The notes below the pieces were generated by a model. It was not told the origin of the DNA. It saw nothing but the letters and a program-made list of their open reading frames with translations, and did not search any database. Below are positions 50,516-61,779 of a stretch of 64,000 bases of DNA, in pieces. This stretch comes from Epithemia pelagica (taxonomy: Eukaryota > Protista > Bacillariophyta): NCBI GenBank assembly GCA_946965045.2, contig OX337234.1, positions 1,488,001 to 1,552,000 on the forward strand, read 5' to 3'. How positions within the stretch are numbered: position 1 is the stretch's first letter; each line of letters opens with the position of its first letter. The position numbers and the translations under genes were made by a program.

Positions 50516-50971
50516 ATTTCCGCCCGTAGCTCACAACTGGCATCATGGTCACAATGTCACCCAATGCCTTGAAAAGTCTGTGGGGGACAAAGGAGAGAGA
50601 GAAAGGGGAAACGGAACCTACCCCTACTAGCTGGTTTCAGGGTTTAAGCCAGTGAAGTAGAATCTACAGGGCTTCCTACCAGAAGAGAAATCCTCGATAG
50701 CGTTCTCATTACTAGTGAATGAAAATGTCCGACTGGCAACTTCCCAGAGTCTTTGAATAATATTTTATTATTTTTAGTGTATTGTGTGACAGCTTCCGAA
50801 CGCTGGAATTGCGTCCAAAATGATGAAAAAACGGTTGTTGTCTAATGACCATGGTGGAGGGCCATCCCAACCGTTCCAGGTGTTGCCGAGCTGCATCTGG
50901 ATGCTTTAGGGTTTACTTGAACCACCCCCAATGGGGCAACACCTGGACGGATCGGCATCATCCACAAAAGA

Positions 50972-53900
50972 ATGACGCGATCATTCAATTCACCCCACGA
51001 ACAACAGTCTCGGACGAAACCAAATTTTGATGGGAAAGAGGTTGCCACTGCATTTCGGACGCGATGCTCTCCTGTCAACTTTGGATTCTGCAACATAGGG
51101 ATCCGAGATGTCGAGATTTTGGGGTTCCTGAACACTTGGTTTCCAGGATTGTTGGTGGTGAACATGAACCGTGCTTTTGCATTAGACAGAATCTTGGAAA
51201 CCTGTTTTGAAGATGTGACGAAGCCTAACAAGCATGGCTTCTACCTCCACAAGCTTACGATCAAGAAGAAGAGATACACATTTTACTACGTCAGCAAAGA
51301 CAAGAAAGAACCACCAGTGATGTTGGACGATCACCAAGAATGGCTGGAGGCTGCAGAAATGAACGTGATTCGGCGGTCGGGACGAGCGCAGCCAACGAAG
51401 CGAAAGAACGAAATACATGAAGAGGACTCAACAAAAGGAAAGTATGCAAAGACCAGCACAACACCACCAACGATGAGGAACAATGGACTGCAGCCACATC
51501 CACCACCGCTGACAATTGGATTCAGTGCCGCATCAATGCAAATATCATCGCCGTCTGATGGCTCACACAGCATGGCGGCAACAACCAATCACGCTCAAAT
51601 GATGGAGAGCCCTCGTTTTCTCATTGGAGGAGAGGCCGGCAGTGTGCCATCAGCTGCAAAGACAGTCAATGATGGCAATCCAGGGATATTGCCCGTTGGA
51701 AATCCCGAGGTATTGCCCATTGGTTTTACAGCAACTAGTGAGGAGACCATCCGATTTATCCAAGCGATGGAAGATAACTTTTTTGATCAGCCAAGGATGT
51801 GTTTGCTCTTTAAGGGCAAGCAAGATACTCCAGGATCTGCGAAAAACAACCTTTTGGGATGGATAGAAACCCTTTCCACTGCCCCGTTCAGCTTAGCTTC
51901 CATGGCGAAAATTGTTAACAAGGCAGACGTCTATCCACTTACACCGGAGCAGCTACCAAAGTTGCAGTTCATGGCGACATACCTTTGTCTCGTGTACAAG
52001 ATTGCGCTGGTCAACATGCCAGATGGCCAAACGTTTCAAGGCTGCATCGAGGAAGCATCAAGGAGACTTGCTTTAGTCTATGGTAACGAGCATATAAAAA
52101 GACATCATTCAACAATTTCGCGATGGCACAAGTTCTTTCGTGAAGATGGTTGTCTCCCTCATCCAAATCACCTAGTGCAAAATGGGAAGGATCCATCACC
52201 CGCTCTCTTTGTCAACGTACCCGAAGCAAAACTGAAGTTTGAAAAGTGGGCAAAGGAAAATGTGGCGACACTTTCCACAGAGACTGCTCTAGTCTACATC
52301 AAGGAGACTTTGCTTCCGGAAGTATACAATGTGCTCCTGGAAGAGCGTGTAAAAGATGATGCAGGAAGCCCGATGACATACGAGGACTTCTTGGCTAGCA
52401 TGAAGCTAACCAAAGTATCGCGCTCCACCGCAAGGCGCTGTATTGCCAGTGCAGGGCTGGTCTACAAGGACCACAAAAAATCTATTTCAATGATCGTCAT
52501 GAAAACCCTGAGAACGTTGCACACAGGGCTGCATTCATCAAAGAGTACTTCAAAGCGGAAGAGCTTTCATATCGGTGGGTGCAGCTCCCTGTCGAGGATG
52601 CCATCAAACTGGAAAATGAAGGGAAATGCTGACAACGAGAAGCTCCTACCGCAGAGTTTTGTATTTGAGTACACAGATACACCCACGGGAATTCAGATGC
52701 GGGAGTACCATATTGACGCCTTCCACGAAGAGTTTAAAAGGTACATCAAGCCTGAAAACGCAATTCACAATGGAAACCTATCATATAGGTTCCCTTCGGA
52801 CCGTAGACCCGTCATCATCATCGGACAGGATGAATCAATCTACAAACAGTTTTCGTTTTCAGCAAAGACGTGGTACACTAAGGATGGCGTAACAAAACTG
52901 CTACCGAAAGACGATGGGCATGGACTTATGGTCAGTGCTTGTGTAAGTCGATCGTGGGGGTTTCTTATGGATGGAAATCCGGCACTTGGAAATGCTCTAC
53001 CCCTGATCAATCAGCTTCGTCTCCAAATGAGGCACCGTACGTATATCTCTACCGAGTCTGCAATGAAGATCAAAGGCACCGCTTTCAAAAGTGAAGTTGT
53101 CAACTCGGAATCCTTCACTCGATTTTTCCAATATGGAAATGACAAAGAGGGATACTGGTGCTATGACCACATAGCATTGCAGTTAGAGGACATTGTCGAT
53201 TGCCTCGTGATCATGTTCCCCGTGCACGACTTTCTGTTTTTGTTTGACCAAAGCAGTGGTCATGGAAGACAACAAACCGATGGACTAAATGCACTGAACA
53301 TGAATAACGACTGGGGAGGAGCGGTTCCCAATATGCGGGACACAGAAACTGTTGACAAATCTTGCCTTGGTCCGTATAACCATCCCAGGAAACTAAAAGT
53401 TGGTGACGTGCAACACCTGGTTTATCAAGCGAGTGACCCTGGTCCTGTTGCTAAAAAAGGACGTCTTCTTGACGATGCACAACGTCTCGAATAAAGGCTT
53501 GCACGTGCATCTGATACCACAAGAAAGCGCCCCCTCACAAAGCGAGAGCTCATGGCAAAACTTGTTGAGGTCACGGGACCTGCAACGCATAGTTCGTTTC
53601 AATCGAAAAACACACGAGAGTTGCAGGACCTTTGTAAACGCTACCAGATTGCAACGGAGGTCCACGAGAATGTTATGGAACAAGGATGGATGGACGCTCC
53701 TAAGGGTTTATTCCAAGTATTGTGGGAGAGGGGATGGATCGACCCTGATAACATGACCAAGCACGTCAAGACAACGAGAGATGCATGGTTGGAAGCGGAT
53801 AAGAAGACTGTGAAAGAAGACTGCATGGAAGAATACAAGAAGTACTCTCTTTTTTGTCTTATGAGCGAGTGCTTGGACTTTAAAGCAGAAAAGTCTGCCA

Positions 53901-54337
53901 TGGAGAAGCTTGCACAAGATCTGTCGGAACGGCATCATATCAAGATCAATATTTTGAAGTCGACCAAGTATCATTGTGAGATTGCTGGTGAAGGGATTGA
54001 GTATGGCTGGGGCTTCTCGAAGAAGATCTTTCGCTCTATGTTACTGGAACAGAAGAAAACCAAAGCTGCCTTTCATCAATGTGTAAAGACAAGCCTTCGA
54101 AAGGCAACGTCTGAACTGGTATGGACAATGTCAGCAAAGGCACGTCGCTATATGTTGACGTATTTCTTTCTGGATCAAAATTCTATCAATGGAGACTTTG
54201 AATCTGCAGGTCTCTCGTACCACGAAATCGAAAGGATGCAAAAGACATTGAAGTGTCACCGATCTGCTTTGGATCAAGACCAGGGCTTCATCTGGGAACT
54301 CTGGAGAGAAGCACGAGACAATGAGGACGGACGCTGA
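50972..54337 (+). pseudogene. DDE transposase, IS630-Tc1-mariner-like with long D-E insertion; in-frame stop and compensating frameshifts
   Basis: GQDES (D1), FLFDQSSGH (D2) and KYHCEIAGEGIEYGWG (E). An in-frame TAA at 53492-94 separates ORFs 50972..53494 and 53552..54337. No TIRs found. Confidence 0.7.
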
Positions 54338-54624
54338 TCTAGTTTCTCTCTCTTTCTCTATCTATATACGCGTTACTTAACAATTTATACTATTAATCCA
54401 TTATATTGAATGTAATCCTTGTCAGTTATTGGTATCAATGATCACTTCCGTGTTGTGTGCTCGTATGCTCGTGTTGCGTGTTCGATTCTCAGTTTGTAAA
54501 TAGATCAAAAATGTGCGCGACCGAGAAAAATGGACAATTTTCGGAGCACATCTTGCGCGAAAACACGCCCCCCTCTCTGAAAGCACGCACGCATCGCAAA
54601 ACTCGCACCCCAACCCTTAAGTAA

Positions 54625-54701
54625 CTCAGCCCACATACCAAAAACTTTCCCGTTTTTTTAGTATGTGAGCTGGAGATTTTCTTTTTGGTATGTGGGCTGA
54701 G
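54625..54701. repeat. Perfect 20-bp inverted repeat (54625-54644 / 54682-54701) with a third degenerate copy between
   Basis: CTCAGCCCACATACCAAAAA ... TTTTTGGTATGTGGGCTGAG. ttttttagtatgtgagctg lies at about 54654-54672. Confidence 0.8.
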
Positions 54702-54758
54702 GAGAGTGCTGCGTTTCGTGTTTCTTGTGTTTCGTGTTTTGAGTTTTGCGTTTCGACC

Positions 54759-57722
54759 ATGGGGAAACCAAGCTCAAAGAAACAGCCTTCAAAAGCGGGT
54801 GCTCAAAACCGAGACAGCATGACTGACCAAGGAAATCTTAACGCTCTTCTACTTGCAATAGATGCAGCGGAAGGGCCGTCAGCGGCAGCAGCAGCGGCGC
54901 CCGAAGCAGCAGCAGCCGCAGCGCCCGAAGTAGCAGCAACAGACGAAGCGACAACAACAAAGCACCATCGGTTTCTTTCGGATAAAGACTTTGCCCACGT
55001 GAAGGAGAAAAAGCTTGCAGATGTTCGGCGTGGCCATCCAGGGAAGGACGACAGCAAACAGTATTCGGACACTCAAATGCGGCAGCTCCTCACCGAGACG
55101 CGCACAGCGGACTACAAGAAAGGCGTCGAGGAAGTGGAGAAACTCTCTACTCGTTCTGGACGGGATCCAATCAAGACTTTCAGAGAAGGACTCAAGACGC
55201 TCTCCAAGATCAAAGACAGTGCTGTACTTGCCTGTGCTGTGGGAGAGTATGTCTCACGGAAGATTACAGCCACTTTTTCGGTCCAAGAAGCTCCAATTCG
55301 GAAGCCCGGTTCAGGCTTGCAAAAGGGGAAAATTGTGCCACTTTCGGGTGGAATGGGTCTTCCTGTGAAGAAGAACAGAAAACATACCTTCCCGATCGGC
55401 AAGTATGCCCAATACACATTTGCAAACAAGCCGGTAATCAAGACCTACCTTGGGAAACTGCTCCTGTTTGAGGTGAGGGAGTCAAGACTCCCGGGCGCCG
55501 GGTTTGGCGTTTTTGCAGCTCGGGACATCGACGATGATGAAGTGCTTGGCGCGTACACAGGATACGACGTCACGTCTCGGACAGTTGTACCCAACGAGTA
55601 CGCGATTCACTTCGGACGTGACAATCGAACGCTTCAAGCAGACAACGACGATCACTTCGGCATGGGGCTGCACTTAATCAACGACCACCTACACCATCGG
55701 TACGGGACAGACAATCCACCAGATGAATCGGACGACGGTTACAACGTGAGAATCATGCCGAATCTTCTAGTCAAGGCAATCAAGCCGATCAAAAAGGGCG
55801 ACGAGCTGCGGTTGTTCTACAACCTTACGGACGTATCGACGACGTCCTCCGAACAGGTCATTCGAACGTCGTGGAAAGGTGACGACGAAGACGAGGGAAA
55901 AACGCAGTCGACCCAATGATGAAAATGAAGACGAGAAAAAGGCAAAGAAGGCTTTCGTTACTTCTCCTTCTACTGTTTTCCGTCCAGTTGCTACTGTTGC
56001 TCGTCCTCCTTCTCCGCCTCCTCCGCAAGACGTTTCTGAGCACTACCATTCACCCTCTCAGCTGCCGCCGCAGTATCCTCCGCCGCATTATCATCATCCT
56101 CCGCCGCAGTACAATAATCCTCATCCTCCGCGCCACAGTACAATCATCCTCATCCTCCGCGCCACAGTACAATCATCCTCATCCTCCGCCGCAGTACAAT
56201 CATCCTCATCCTCCGCCGCAGTACAATCATCCTCATCCTCCGCCACAGTACAATCATCCTCATCCTCAACCGCAGTACAATCATCCTCATCCTCCGCCGT
56301 ATCATCCTCCCCCACAGACAATCACCCCCATCAGCCGCATTACCATGGACATCCTCCGTCGTACGATCAACCCCACTATGGAGGTTACCGGGGGGCTCCC
56401 CATGATCAGCAGCAGCAACAACGCACGACCCAGCCGGTCGAAGGCTCACCCGAGCGTCCGAGCAATGCCGTCCCACCTGCAGCACAAGCTCAACCCGAGC
56501 TTCCGAGCAATCCCGTCCCACCTGCAGCACAAGCTCAACCCGCCACTCAAGCCAATCCCGGCCCTACTGGAATGTTAGTACCAGTGGTTGCCCCGCCAGA
56601 AACAGCAGGAGACGACATGGATGAAAATTCTATGAATGAGGAGATGATTGCAATCGACGAGGAAATGCAGAAGGGTCAATGGCAACGTAAACAGGCGTTG
56701 CAAAATAGAGAATTGCGCTCGAAGTATTTCAAGTGGCTATATGATATTGAAAACAAAATGTATCGAGCATGTTTTTTTCGACTCCGCCAGATCTCCTCGA
56801 CTTGTTGGAGAGAGCGTGGGACGACAAAGGCTTGGACAATAAAGCAAAGGGCGCATACTTCAAATCTGTTCAAGACTACACACCAAATTTGTTGATGGCA
56901 ATGATGGAAAATGAGGGCTTGGCGACCAACACTCGGTTCTTCAGTCTCTTCGTCCCAGCTTATGTTCAAAAAGTCACGACAGAGTTCAAGCAGGCGCTTG
57001 CCTCAGCTCTTTATGCAATGCAATACGCAAAAGATGAAGCATTTGCGGACGAAATGAGCATTTCCCTTTCGTTTATGAAGACCACACAAGAAAAAGTCCA
57101 AGAACCTCACATCGACTTCTTGTTCCCGGTCGTAACAGGAAACCTGTCCGAAGGTCCCAAAACGCCCTCCGGGAAGAAGAAACCCACAAAGATGACTCGG
57201 AGAGCTTATTCAGATCTGCCATTCCGGGAACGCGTACCCTTTATTGTTTTCATGCCGCTGTCGGAGGAGGGTATGTCCATTGAATTGTGGAAATACCGCG
57301 GTGAGAAGCACGAAGACTACCCGCATGAGTTGGGTAAAGTGGTACAAATCCCGTATGGCAAGTTTCTCCTCGTTCGCGGAGATACTGTCCATGCTGGTGG
57401 CTCTATGACTGGAGAGTTGGGGAGTCCACGTGCACATTTCTATGTGTACCAAGGAAAAGATGGGACCATCCACGATCCCATGCCAAAGAATACCTACAAG
57501 CTACCTTCTGGAGCAGGAAGGCTTTCAGAGTTCTACTTCCACCAGAACGACATTCCTGGTACTCGCCCAAGTGGGCTCGTTCGGGTTCACCTTTGGGTGA
57601 ATAAGGACGAGCGTGTTAACGCCCTTAGTGATAATCCTCGTAATGTGCTTGTGGCTAAGAATTATAAACCTGGTAAGAAGATCGCGACCAAAGAAGCCGA
57701 TCAAACTTATATGGTACGTTGA
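54759..57722 (+). pseudogene. Predicted single gene: SET methyltransferase, Pro/His/Tyr repeat linker, 2OG-Fe(II) dioxygenase; split by about five small indels
   Basis: SET motifs GAGFGVFA, LHLINDH and IKKGDELRLFY. Dioxygenase motifs QEPHID (HxD), DTVHAGG (H) and PRAHFY (R). Frames join with single-base corrections at 55898-902, about 56128, about 56158, about 56315 and 56772-78. Confidence 0.6.
56085..56330 (+). repeat. Coding tandem repeat, about 27-bp unit (PPQYNHPHP)
   Basis: Repeated ccgcagtacaatcatcctcatcct units. Confidence 0.85.
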
Positions 57723-58133
57723 GTTGCAGTATGACATTAAGATTTATTAGTTTATTCCTTCATATTATACTTTAGTGCATTGTCGTGTTTGTTTCCATAA
57801 AGTGTCGAAAACGCAAAATATGAGATAAGCCTTTTTTCAATCATAGCTCGGCTGGGACCAATCACAAGTTTCCCTCATATACATCCATACTAGTACAAGG
57901 CGCGACCAATCTCATCCGCAGACCGGGACCCAACTACCGACACTGGGAAGCTGCATCAATGCAAGTAGGAGAAGACGACGATGACGAAGAAAAAGACGAT
58001 GAGCGACAGTGACAATGCAACGACTATGACAAGGACGGCAACAAGTACATCAAGGAGAAATGAAGAAAGTCATTCAAAAGTGAAAGCTATTATAGTGGTC
58101 AAAGAATCGTGTGCATCCATCTGAGAAAGCCTA

Positions 58134-59112
58134 CTAGTAGTCATCCTCTTCGGCCTCATCGTAGTACTGCGAGCCGAAAAGATCATTGTCCTGAGTCCTG
58201 ATGACGTCTTCTTGCGTCTCAAGAAATCCATCATCAGCGTAGGAATCGATGGATGTGCGGTAGGCACCAGAGGGATTGTAATAGAACAACGGAGGTGACA
58301 TGGGCACCTTTTCCCTGGTCAGCGACAGCTGGAGAACCATGTGAGGGTCAGCTGCACCACTGAGCTGAACTTCGCGTTCTGCAACCTGACGCTGGAATGC
58401 GTGCTTCTGGGAAGGGGTCCATGGAAAAGGTTGTTTCTTCGGGGAGCACTTCTTGTTCGAGGAATCCGTCGTCTTTGGGGAATCTCTCTTCTTCGGGGAA
58501 TCCACCTTCTTCGGGGTCACATGTGACTCTGCCGATGCTGATAAGTCCTCAACATCGTTCTTTGCCACCCCATTGCTCTCTTTGTCGTTGGGACTCTTGT
58601 CTAATGGCAGCAGAATGCATGGTGAGAGATGGAAAGGCGAAATCATCGAACAATCTAAACTTACCACTCTTTTCAGCTTTCTTGCCACCAGCTTCCATCG
58701 CAAGAAGTTCTGCCGCAATGTCCGATAGGCCTGCCTGTTCGACGTTCTGGCAGCTGATGAAGCGCACCGGGAGGCCGTTTGCATCCCAAATGGTCAGCTG
58801 CCTCTACGTCGCACGACTGTACCAAGGATCGTCTCCGTGCATGTCGAAGGTGACGTGCTTCGTCGTCAATTTTTTGTCGCTTGGTGACGGGCTTGTTTTG
58901 AGGGGTGTCTTCTTCTTGGCCGTCGCCGTCTTCTTGGACGATGCTGTCTTCTTGGCTAATGCTGCGTTCTTGGCCGTTCCTGTTGCCGTCGCCGTCTTCT
59001 TCTTCGTCTTCGACACTGTGTCGAGAGGCTTCTTTGCCTTCATCTTTTTTTTGCTGGAGGGAGCTTCGGCGTTGGAGCGAACTTGCTCCTTCGCTGTGGA
59101 TCGAGTGCTCAT
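58134..59112 (-). pseudogene. Lys/Ala/Thr-rich, SPKK-containing histone-H1-tail-like protein with acidic C-terminus (intron 58601-58664; in-frame TAG at 58804-06)
   Basis: KTKKKTATATGTAKNAALAKKTASSKK, then TPKK/SPKK/SPKT/SPKK after a GTAAG...TTAG phase-1 intron. Confidence 0.5.
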
Positions 59113-59352
59113 CGATGAACTTCAAGTTACGCGCATGTTTGAATTATGATCTTGTTTGTTTGATTGTTGTATTTGATTGTCTTGTTTGTTGGTCCATCTC
59201 ATTTTATTGTGTCATCTCGGGATCCTCCCGGCGCTCATTTGTGAACAATATCGGCGCACGCCAAGTGAGTTGCAGCTTCCGAACGTGTCGGACAACAATC
59301 AAACAGGAGAAACGAAGAGCAACGAGACAAGGAGAAGCAAGAGAAAACGACG

Positions 59353-59850
59353 ATGTCCAGCTTCAAATACAACAAAGAGGATGGTAATCCTGAGAGTATT
59401 CTTTGTCTCCCATTCAAGTCTTGCTTTTATGCAAGAAACGTCTGTGCGCTCCTTGGGCCGATGTCGAAAAGCAAGGACTCAGGACGAAACGTCGTGGACC
59501 GCGGCCATCTACTGGTCCAGCGGGAGCTTTGCACAGATTATCTTCGGGTTGCTATCTTCCACCGGGAGGCAACGAGTGAGCACGAAGAACCAGGGTTGGT
59601 TGTACCGGTTGGGTTCATTGCTTTGACCCATATGGAAGCTGTGGTTGGAGAGAGCCGCCAAGAAACCAGGGGACGCATCCGCCTCTACACGCGCTGCTCT
59701 ATCACCCCTTCGTTGCGTATGGAGCCCCAGATTGTGACCATCTACATGAGTACTGGTGATATGGATCGCCTCAACATTGCGCTCGGTTCAGAAATGATGA
59801 AGTATCCGCATCAAAACCTCTTCTTCAATCATCAACAAGCACAAGCTTAA
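59353..59850 (+). CDS. Hypothetical protein (165 aa)
   Basis: ATG-initiated ORF with globular composition. No motif recognised. Confidence 0.4.
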   Translation: MSSFKYNKEDGNPESILCLPFKSCFYARNVCALLGPMSKSKDSGRNVVDRGHLLVQRELCTDYLRVAIFHREATSEHEEPGLVVPVGFIALTHMEAVVGESRQETRGRIRLYTRCSITPSLRMEPQIVTIYMSTGDMDRLNIALGSEMMKYPHQNLFFNHQQAQA

Positions 59851-60784
59851 GTCTACAACACTAGCACTCACAAGTGTTTAAGGATTCACTAGTGTTTTAC
59901 GATTATCATTCGAGTAAAAATCAAGCTTGTTGTACCAAAGTCTGCAGCCGTCGCGTTGCCTTCTCGACATGGCTTCGTGAGTCAAAACATGTGTATTAAT
60001 AGTATCACTTTGTGACGTGAACTACGCTTGATCTTTGTTCCATGTATCTAATGACGAGAATATTACTTTTTAACGTGAATTACGCTACAATATACAATAG
60101 TCGCTGCTCCATCATTCGATTCTACGATACGAATTGAGGTGCATTGGTTGCGCCGTAATTTTGCCGCAGTAAATGACGCATCGACGACCTATAGACGATA
60201 AAAAGCCACTTACCCAACGAATTCAAGCCAACCAACGTTGTCCGTCCTCAACCCATGTACGAAGAAGAGGTTCCACGCATGGGATCATGGAGCCGTTGCC
60301 TATACGAGTAGAGATCGGCCAAAAGAGCCGCTCACCATGGTCGATTTTTGGTAGAACACGTAGGGCCTAATTAGAAGGGCTATATTAAGGGGATGGCTGG
60401 CGTGGAACTCGTAGCATTTGTACTGCGAGCTACGTCACTCGCATTTCGTCTGAAACCAGCTTGTACCCAGTTTTCAGTTTTCAAATTTCAAAACTAGGAG
60501 TACCCCCTTCGAGAAGTCGAAGAGGTAGCCTTTTGTACCTATCGATAGGAATAGGAGGTGTCTTCCGTCGCCAAAAATAATGTAGTTTTTCCTAATAGTG
60601 TACTTTCGCGCATGTCAATCTATATGATTCCCCATATTATCCTAGAATTTTTATACTCCGAATGAGCCGGCCGTCCTCCTGTAGACTTGTACAACAGCCT
60701 ACGAGAGTTTTTTGTGCGACTGTATTTACGAAAAAATTGTAACGATCGGAGGGAGTACAATAATTTGTGGATACAGAGAGACTA

Positions 60785-61523
60785 TCCCCCAGCGGGGGTG
60801 TTTTTGAGGGAGTAATTTCGTGTAGCCACCCCCTTCTCTGTTCGCTGGATCTTGACGGTAGGCATATCTCATTTCCTCCACCACGATAACAACACGACAA
60901 TCAAACTTTGTTGTTGCTGGTGACCTCCAATGGCCACCCCATCATGATCTGACCATCATATGCTTCATCTGGGTACCATGGCAGTGCATTGTGAGGGACA
61001 CAGTGGATTCGGGCCACTCTAGGAAATGACCAATACAGTGACGCGTAATACAGGAACAATAGGAGACCATGATGGCATGAAAATACATGAGAGTTGATGT
61101 TTTGCTATCAATGCAGCGCGTAACTACTACTGTTATGTGTATTGTAGATCAATAGGTGTTCAAACAATGCAAGATAATAGCCATATTGTCCCTTTGAGTT
61201 GCTTCGTTCGAAATTGTGAGACGTCGCGTCCGTGCCTGTGCCACGAGGCATGGCGCCTCTGAGTCTGATGCATAACAGCCTTAACCTTTAAACTTTGGTG
61301 ATGCAGATGCATTCTACACTATTGGTTTGAGGTCTATGACTGGGAAGACAGGTTTCAAGAGTCCAAATAGGTGCACAACAACCTGTGCAACACCATGGCC
61401 CGTGTTGTTATCGTGGTGGAGGAAATGAGATATGCCTACCGTCAAGAAATAGGTTATTATTTGCTCTTAGGGAAGGGGGTGGCTACACGAAATTACACCC
61501 TCAAAGCCACCCCCGCTGGGGGG
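60785..61523. mobile_element. MITE-like element with long bipartite TIRs and TA flanks
   Basis: 60786-60836 vs 61472-61522 (51 bp, 3 mismatches) and 60850-60896 vs 61401-61447 (47 bp, perfect) are inverted. TA at 60783-84 and 61524-25. Confidence 0.65.
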
Positions 61524-61779
61524 TAACAGAGAGAAGAGAGAAGAGAGACCCAATGCCAAAAAACGGACGTCTCACCAAGACAAGCATTGACCAATCATAC
61601 GACTTCATTCAGACCAACGACACCGAATTGGTCCCGCACGAACAGCCATGCACGTCTCAAAACCCAACTGCCTCCTCAACGATCGCCACAAGTTGTGGCG
61701 ATCATTTTTTGACACACAGCCATAAAATTATCGAGACCTCACATTGAGAAGAGAAGACATTGTCAAGTGAACGGGAAAG

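Follow-up and report, generated by a model that had tools for sequence, protein, structure and literature searches.

A decayed gene for a predicted SET-oxygenase fusion, very likely cargo of a cut-and-paste DNA transposon in a diatom-type genome

We analyzed a 64,000-nucleotide stretch of Epithemia pelagica contig OX337234.1 (positions 1,488,001 to 1,552,000, forward strand), hereafter called the window, in which a reading made from the sequence alone had proposed, at positions 54759–57722 of the window, a frame-broken gene for a SET methyltransferase fused to a 2-oxoglutarate (2OG)-Fe(II) dioxygenase. This segment is very likely the decayed second gene of one copy of a cut-and-paste DNA transposon of ~9.8 kb, and the intact form of that gene is a SET-oxygenase fusion. 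In the host genome, the fusion gene is the cargo, as open reading frame 2 (ORF2), of a four-gene cut-and-paste DNA transposon that has moved recently. The intact gene is organized as an N-terminal region with no recognizable domain, a PR/SET-type domain, a basic patch resembling a nuclear localization signal (NLS), a linker rich in Pro, Tyr, and His, a helical segment, and a C-terminal double-stranded β-helix domain.

A DNA search of the window's own assembly (60.5 Mb in 23 contigs) returned dozens of related copies. Several of these paralogues contain a single unbroken ORF, encoding 948–971 aa from an MGKPS start within open frames of 966–993 aa, in line with the length of ~990 aa predicted in the sequence-only reading. 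A profile search of the same genome identified at least 21 open frames of 895–993 aa around the oxygenase match, all without an internal stop. The 21 frames fall into at least four size classes, of 957–993 aa, 966–984 aa (mostly 971), ~895 aa, and 943 aa; the ~895-aa and 943-aa subfamilies are known from match coordinates and open-frame lengths alone, and in the 943-aa class the DNA matches of the SET region fall inside the same frame span. The fusion is thus real, because intact paralogues run through both domains and it does not depend on frame mending alone: the SET domain and the oxygenase domain, with its HxD...H...R signature, are predicted to form one polypeptide of ~970 aa, as had been proposed, and intact two-domain homologues exist in the same genome in at least four subfamilies. 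It is hardly credible that the two domains belong to adjacent, separate genes that merely resemble a fusion. The SET piece of the window (from 54759) and the oxygenase piece (with an ATG at 56769) are each open alone, which favors two genes, but 21 copies, which represent at least four subfamilies, have unbroken frames of 895–993 aa that cover both domains, and the split in the window consists of indels relative to those intact copies.

In the window, direct reading of the forward strand places the ORF2 start ATG (MGKPSSKK) at 54759, a run of five A at 55898–55902, a run of seven T at 56772–56778, the His-Ile-Asp triplet (HxD) at 57108–57116, the distal His at 57390–57392, the conserved Arg at 57429–57431, and the last base of the stop codon at 57722; start, A5, T7, HxD, distal His, and stop all lie where the sequence-only reading had put them. 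The span is made up of four ORF pieces in shifting frames (54690–55919, 55879–56895, 55916–56578, and 56769–57722). The first piece of the gene (54759–55901) carries the N-terminal region and the SET domain (~55500–55823; Pfam SET, E=2e-5) and shows 86% tblastn identity with the intact fusion protein. It is followed by the basic, NLS-like stretch and the Pro/Tyr/His-rich repeat linker (55897–56320), in which the second and third frame breaks occur and whose repeat number varies between intact copies. The remainder of the linker and the helical segment that precedes the oxygenase domain (56311–56778) end, on the 3′ side, in the T7 run, and the fourth piece (56769–57722) corresponds to the 2OG-Fe(II)-oxygenase-like domain, as indicated by homologues, invariant residues, a structure model, and fold matches.

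The frame breaks were mapped by aligning the window DNA to the intact paralogous coding sequences L014 and L002. At the first break (~55899), in the A5 run, the window is 2 nt short relative to both paralogues, which is equivalent to the removal of one A suggested by the sequence-only reading. The second (~56123–56152) and third (~56311) lie within the Pro/Tyr/His repeats and correspond in the alignment to indels of 7–8 nt and 5–23 nt, that is, not to single-base changes, and at the fourth (56778) the T7 run is 1 nt short. The sites repaired in the sequence-only reading are the same four areas. Programmed frameshifting was considered and rejected: the four breaks differ in sign, and the low-complexity sequence in which they occur is free of breaks in the paralogues.

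That reading had left decay and long-read error as alternative sources of the indels, and decay is the likelier. Were the breaks errors of long reads or of assembly in homopolymers and repeats, the window gene would be intact; two of them do lie at homopolymers, A5 and T7, and the other two in a short-period repeat of the kind on which an assembler may slip. This explanation is nevertheless very improbable, because the homologous runs and repeats contain no break in 21 paralogues of the same assembly, two of the breaks involve several bases, and the adjacent transposase gene has a clean, substitution-type in-frame stop at 53492–53494. In addition, the window copy has no close relative in the genome, its ends carry mismatches, and the ratio of nonsynonymous to synonymous substitution (dN/dS) of its SET and oxygenase domains relative to intact copies is 0.48–0.65, higher than between intact subfamilies. 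The window copy, in which ORF2 is broken at four sites, the transposase gene contains a nonsense codon, and the ends are mismatched, is an old, divergent, and dead member of the family.

Between two intact subfamilies, dN/dS is 0.30 for the SET domain and 0.42 for the oxygenase domain, with 0.78 for the N-terminus and 0.75 for the linker. Together with the values of the window copy, these figures indicate that both domains have been kept by purifying selection in the transposon lineage and that the window copy drifts. As a separate observation, the synonymous divergence (dS) between the subfamilies represented by L002 and L014 is 0.056 over the first 235 codons of ORF2 and 0.32 in the 3′ half, and the ORF2 of the window is 89–90% identical to one subfamily in its 5′ half (54759–55460) and 81% identical in the remaining 3′ half. 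Recombination or gene conversion thus appears to have made mosaics of the subfamilies.

The SET domain is recognized by the Pfam SET model PF00856, which scores 25.4 bits on the window piece and 29.8 and 25.0 bits on intact copies, with a gathering cut-off of 22.4 bits. In the window, the match extends over residues 271–378 of the ORF that starts at 54690 and covers the full model (1–105), so that the SET domain read earlier in the first piece stands. The nearest solved sequences to this region are the PR domains of MECOM, PRDM16, and PRDM12. As read from the sequence, the GxG motif is present as GAGFGVF and the segment GDELSLFY retains the Tyr; HLINDH replaces the NH(S/C) motif, with the Asn retained and the His changed to Asp. 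Many PR domains are weak or inactive.

The C-terminal domain is predicted to be a 2OG-Fe(II) oxygenase that bears a complete set of ligands on a double-stranded β-helix. An AlphaFold2 prediction made with the family alignment reached a predicted local distance difference test score (pLDDT) of 83 and a predicted template modeling score (pTM) of 0.83, and this model matches only 2OG-Fe(II) oxygenases; a model computed with only three paralogues had a pLDDT of 37 and was discarded. The top PDB matches in Foldseek are AndA, FtmOx1, and AsqJ (E ~2e-5, template modeling score (TM) ~0.35), and the viral list is also led by 2OG oxygenases. When the model was compared with 48,161 representative chains by VIA-align (VIA), the top 21 of 21 matches were 2OG oxygenases (Z 8.9–10.6), with a lead group at Z 10.2–10.6 composed of AsqJ, PHD-type and bacterial prolyl hydroxylases, TlxIJ, and AndA. 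The AlkB-type entries OsALKBH1, FTO, and Escherichia coli AlkB lie under this group, at Z 8.1–8.4, and no Pfam AlkB match was obtained. JmjC has neither a Pfam match nor an entry among the best 50 VIA matches or the listed Foldseek matches, and TET/JBP has no Pfam match and no entry among the best 50 VIA matches. A profile search of the PDB weakly aligned the segment VHAGG...R with FtmOx1 (E=0.035). The sequence-only reading had called the motifs PhyH/AlkB-like rather than JmjC; the Foldseek, VIA, and profile results place the domain nearer to PhyH-like enzymes and prolyl hydroxylases than to JmjC. The Pfam PhyH model PF05721 itself gives no match, and the proximity to PhyH is one of fold and features only.

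An HMMER profile search of 1.84 billion representative proteins retrieved 215 relatives of the oxygenase domain at E<1e-3, including MMETSP transcripts, a hypothetical protein of the diatom Epithemia clementina, and metagenome proteins. No Pfam match was found in the element copies, at E up to 10, or in 131 relatives, and the domain, for which no Pfam model exists, defines a family of ~200 representatives that come mainly from diatoms and other marine protists. Across 131 sequences, Q100, H103, D105, P153, W164, H198, G200, G201, R211, H213, and Y215 are invariant or nearly so. The iron triad H103, D105, and H198 is invariant or at least 90% conserved in alignments of 56 and 131 members and is present in the window copy. 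Arg211, at least 90% conserved, lies 13 residues past His198 at the start of the next strand and aligns with the FtmOx1 Arg in VHAGG...pR. One family member carries a TFIIS/Med26 N-terminal domain, a nuclear transcription module, and the Epithemia member and one metagenome member sit among ordinary host genes; the gene context of the stand-alone relatives P0005 and P0017 is uninformative. In the window's own genome, the best match to the oxygenase profile (E 9e-105) lies at G000:C1:6216175-6217236 in an open frame of only 394 aa. Known from its match coordinates and frame length, this locus may be a stand-alone host paralogue and the source of the transposon cargo.

The transposon was delimited in the window by blastn against intact 9.76-kb copies and by pattern search and direct reading of its inverted repeats. 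The whole copy, divergent and decayed, spans 9,841 bp on the forward strand (50625–60465). Its left end (50625–50660) consists of TA and a terminal inverted repeat, TA being followed by CTAGCTGGTTTCAG..., and its right end (60430–60465, reverse strand) of a terminal inverted repeat and TA. Six young copies, 97–99% identical along 9.76 kb and inserted in unrelated flanks, share ends in which TA is followed by CAAGCTGAGTTCAG..., with inverted repeats of ~36 bp. Terminal inverted repeats with an apparent TA duplication, a feature of IS630/Tc1/mariner (ITm) elements, were found in the six young copies and in the window copy. The genome contains ~20 full-length copies that are 97–99% alike, and the terminal pattern occurs 112 times in it, vs. 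none for a control pattern. The termini pair at ~9.7 kb, corresponding to full elements, and at ~0.53 kb. The short pairs, ~525–545 bp apart and exemplified by G000:C1:3598611-3599135 and C2:5048717-5049259, are miniature derivatives of the SET-oxygenase transposon family.

The intact copy L032 carries four ORFs, which encode a 1114-aa protein, the 968-aa fusion, a lysine-rich protein of 250 aa on the opposite strand, and a protein of 190 aa. ORF1 (L032:6225-9569, reverse strand) encodes the 1114-aa protein, and its counterpart in the window is a transposase pseudogene on the forward strand (50954–54316), in one frame apart from the stop described above (tblastn, 56% identity over 1139 columns). 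Relatives of ORF1 were found in Nitzschia inconspicua and in marine metagenomes, and the family conserves the motifs GQDES, FDxSxGH, and GEGIEYxWG. The 1114-aa protein has no Pfam match, and the family profile retrieved nothing real from the PDB. A distant relative, P0187, matches DDE_3 at 26.7 bits, below the gathering cut-off of 28.6, through a stretch that aligns with GEGIEYGWG, and HTH_33 is weakly matched in two of 32 ORF1 relatives. Because the motif aligned with DDE_3 occurs together with TA flanks, ORF1 is tentatively assigned as a very divergent IS630/Tc1/mariner-like transposase of the DDE type. The putative second Asp (in FDQSSGH) and Glu (in GEGIEYGWG) are ~250 residues apart; such a spacing far exceeds that of the described IS630/Tc1/mariner groups.

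The two remaining genes are also represented in the window. The homologue of the lysine-rich ORF3 (250 aa in the intact copy) lies on the reverse strand at 58381–58896 (tblastn, 37.5% identity over 184 aa), and that of ORF4 (190 aa in the intact copy) on the forward strand at 59278–59841 (60% identity over 190 aa). Neither ORF3 nor ORF4 matched a Pfam family; ORF4 also had no PDB match, and an atlas search with it gave only a weak, sub-threshold C2-like lead. Two further repeats were observed. At G000:C9:1912868-1931797, four tandem units of ~5.7 kb each contain the left end of the element and parts of the transposase gene, and this array appears to be an amplified truncated copy. Just past the right end of the element in the window, at 60783–61526, lies a repeat of ~745 bp with inverted ends of ~115 bp. 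At least 40 other copies, 86–99% identical, are present in the genome, and the repeat resembles a young, non-autonomous DNA transposon distinct from the element described here.

Outside its own genome, the SET-plus-oxygenase arrangement was found only in one contig (L039) of a second ENA assembly. L039 contains a decayed relic of it, with 77% DNA identity to the ~895-aa subfamily, that is absent from the window's genome. Since other repeats are shared between the two assemblies at 95–98% identity, the second assembly is probably that of a close relative and does not provide independent evidence of a wide distribution. Searches of a set of 5.8 billion proteins with the whole fusion and with the SET region returned only the fusion's own cluster, P0151, although low-complexity words may have displaced candidates in the whole-fusion search. 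The SET or N-terminal region is absent from the 150 best relatives of the oxygenase domain. At 16 metagenome loci with oxygenase relatives, most of them on short contigs, no SET or transposase gene was found nearby, and no relative was found among IMG/VR viral contigs.

We tentatively interpret the fusion, at somewhat less than even confidence, as a transposon-encoded nuclear modifier that counters silencing or marks the copies of the element. We infer that the protein would act in the nucleus on chromatin, or on chromatin-bound proteins, at the element's own copies, where it would counter host silencing or mark the element. Lysine methylation would be the task of the SET domain; the oxygenase domain would act on a protein or a nucleic acid, by hydroxylation or by oxidative demethylation. 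Because the gene is multicopy transposon cargo, the likely beneficiary shifts from the host to the transposon, which the enzyme probably serves. A more specific version, which we regard as rather doubtful, is that of a two-headed chromatin enzyme: the SET domain would write a lysine methyl mark and the oxygenase would oxidize or remove a repressive histone or nucleic-acid mark at the element's own copies, so as to evade silencing. Such an enzyme, if real, would explain the recent burst of the family.

Several points weigh against a chromatin role or against the elements on which it is built. The activity of both domains is predicted from sequence and fold, and their proposed substrates are conjectural. 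The writer-eraser role suggested in the sequence-only reading is likewise hypothetical: no known demethylase family (JmjC, AlkB, or TET/JBP) is the nearest relative of the oxygenase domain, and the nearest folds in the model comparisons include small-molecule enzymes, so that the fold would imply no chromatin target. The SET domain reads IND in place of the canonical NH(S/C) and resembles PR domains. The single fusion product of the intact ORF is deduced from genomic frames, and the recent common origin of the copies could account for part of the low dN/dS. With regard to the carrier, the TA duplication was read from flanks alone and TA could instead belong to the repeat itself, at its outer edge; the transposase lacks a Pfam match, and its DDE_3 link passes through one distant relative below the cut-off.

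Alternatively, the fusion may be real and have no part in chromatin, being either a PhyH-like or prolyl-hydroxylase-like hydroxylase of proteins or small molecules that would serve the element in some other way, for instance by modifying the transposase or a host factor of repair or translation, or a neutral cargo whose SET domain is a non-catalytic binding module. This explanation, the main rival, which we judge rather unlikely, would fit the nearest folds, both small-molecule enzymes (AsqJ, AndA, and FtmOx1) and protein prolyl hydroxylases (PHD, PPHD, and OGFOD1), the PR-like SET domain without a canonical NH(S/C), and the stand-alone oxygenase members, which in Epithemia and on metagenome contigs have ordinary host genes as neighbors. 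However, the purifying selection indicated for both domains in several subfamilies makes neutral cargo unlikely. SET and 2OG oxygenase genes are also carried by unrelated transposons of red algae, oomycetes, and fungi, and the family member with the TFIIS/Med26 N-terminal domain likewise speaks against it.

Transposons with their own epigenetic enzymes are rare and informative, in that they reveal which host silencing marks matter. The host genome here is of diatom type, a group in which the silencing of transposons is poorly understood. Expression and assay could readily start from the many intact copies; the window copy is only a relic. In the literature, we found no report of a SET domain and a 2OG oxygenase in one polypeptide, and none that places such cargo in a diatom or on a Tc1/mariner-like element with TA flanks.

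Compared with known enzymes, the C-terminal domain shares with AsqJ, AndA, FtmOx1, and the PHD-type prolyl hydroxylases the double-stranded β-helix, with HxD, distal His, and Arg on the expected strands, VIA Z scores of 10.2–10.6 over 153–173 residues, and, for FtmOx1, the aligned VHAGG...R segment. It differs from them by an identity of only 8–17%, a TM of ~0.35, and the lack of a Pfam PhyH match; moreover, those enzymes stand alone, act on small molecules or proline, and are not borne by transposons. The SET region aligns well with the PR domains of MECOM, PRDM16, and PRDM12 over the N-terminal strand and the GxG motif, FE(V/L)(K/R)ES.(L/M)PGAG(F/L)G(V/I)(F/W), but with weak E-values (8e-4 to 0.02), and here it stands in a transposon, with no zinc fingers.

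SETMAR, a primate host gene that captured a transposase, is a SET domain fused to the Hsmar1 mariner transposase. It resembles the present system in that a SET domain is tied to a Tc1/mariner-type element; in the latter, however, the SET domain resides on a separate cargo protein of a mobile, multicopy element and is fused to an oxygenase, not to the transposase.

That transposons carry SET or 2OG oxygenase genes as cargo is already known from oomycetes, red algae, and fungi. In Phytophthora, a SET histone methyltransferase is encoded by transposons of the HarbingerS and MuDR types (Kojima and Jurka 2014, cited in PMC12730594). As described there, they are likewise stramenopile DNA transposons with SET cargo, from other transposase superfamilies, and the citing text names no oxygenase domain. 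Fungal DNA transposons encode TET/JBP dioxygenases, which are thought to counter epigenetic silencing (PMC12730594). They share with the present element the carriage of a 2OG-Fe(II) dioxygenase by a DNA transposon, whereas the domain described here has no TET/JBP match in Pfam or among the best 50 fold matches and is fused to SET. Giant elements of brown algae carry a ParB-methyltransferase cargo (PMC12477816).

In the red alga Bostrychia moritziana, the EnSpm-type Plavaka transposons carry a cassette in which PAG2 combines an N6-adenine methylase with SET and PAG3 a ParB-like domain with a PhyH-like 2OG oxygenase whose best HHpred hit is 2OPW; the cassette moves among transposon families, and the chromatin of the element itself has been proposed as its target (bioRxiv 10.1101/2025.02.11.637652). 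SET and a PhyH-like 2OG oxygenase are thus transposon cargo in both cases, the oxygenases being likened by description. In Plavaka, the two reside in two genes, whereas here they are joined in one predicted polypeptide with neither an adenine methylase nor a ParB-like partner, and the carrier is a TA-flanked Tc1/mariner-like element of a diatom-type genome. What distinguishes the present system is the presence of both domains in one protein, which at least four subfamilies of a young and still structurally complete element have kept intact.

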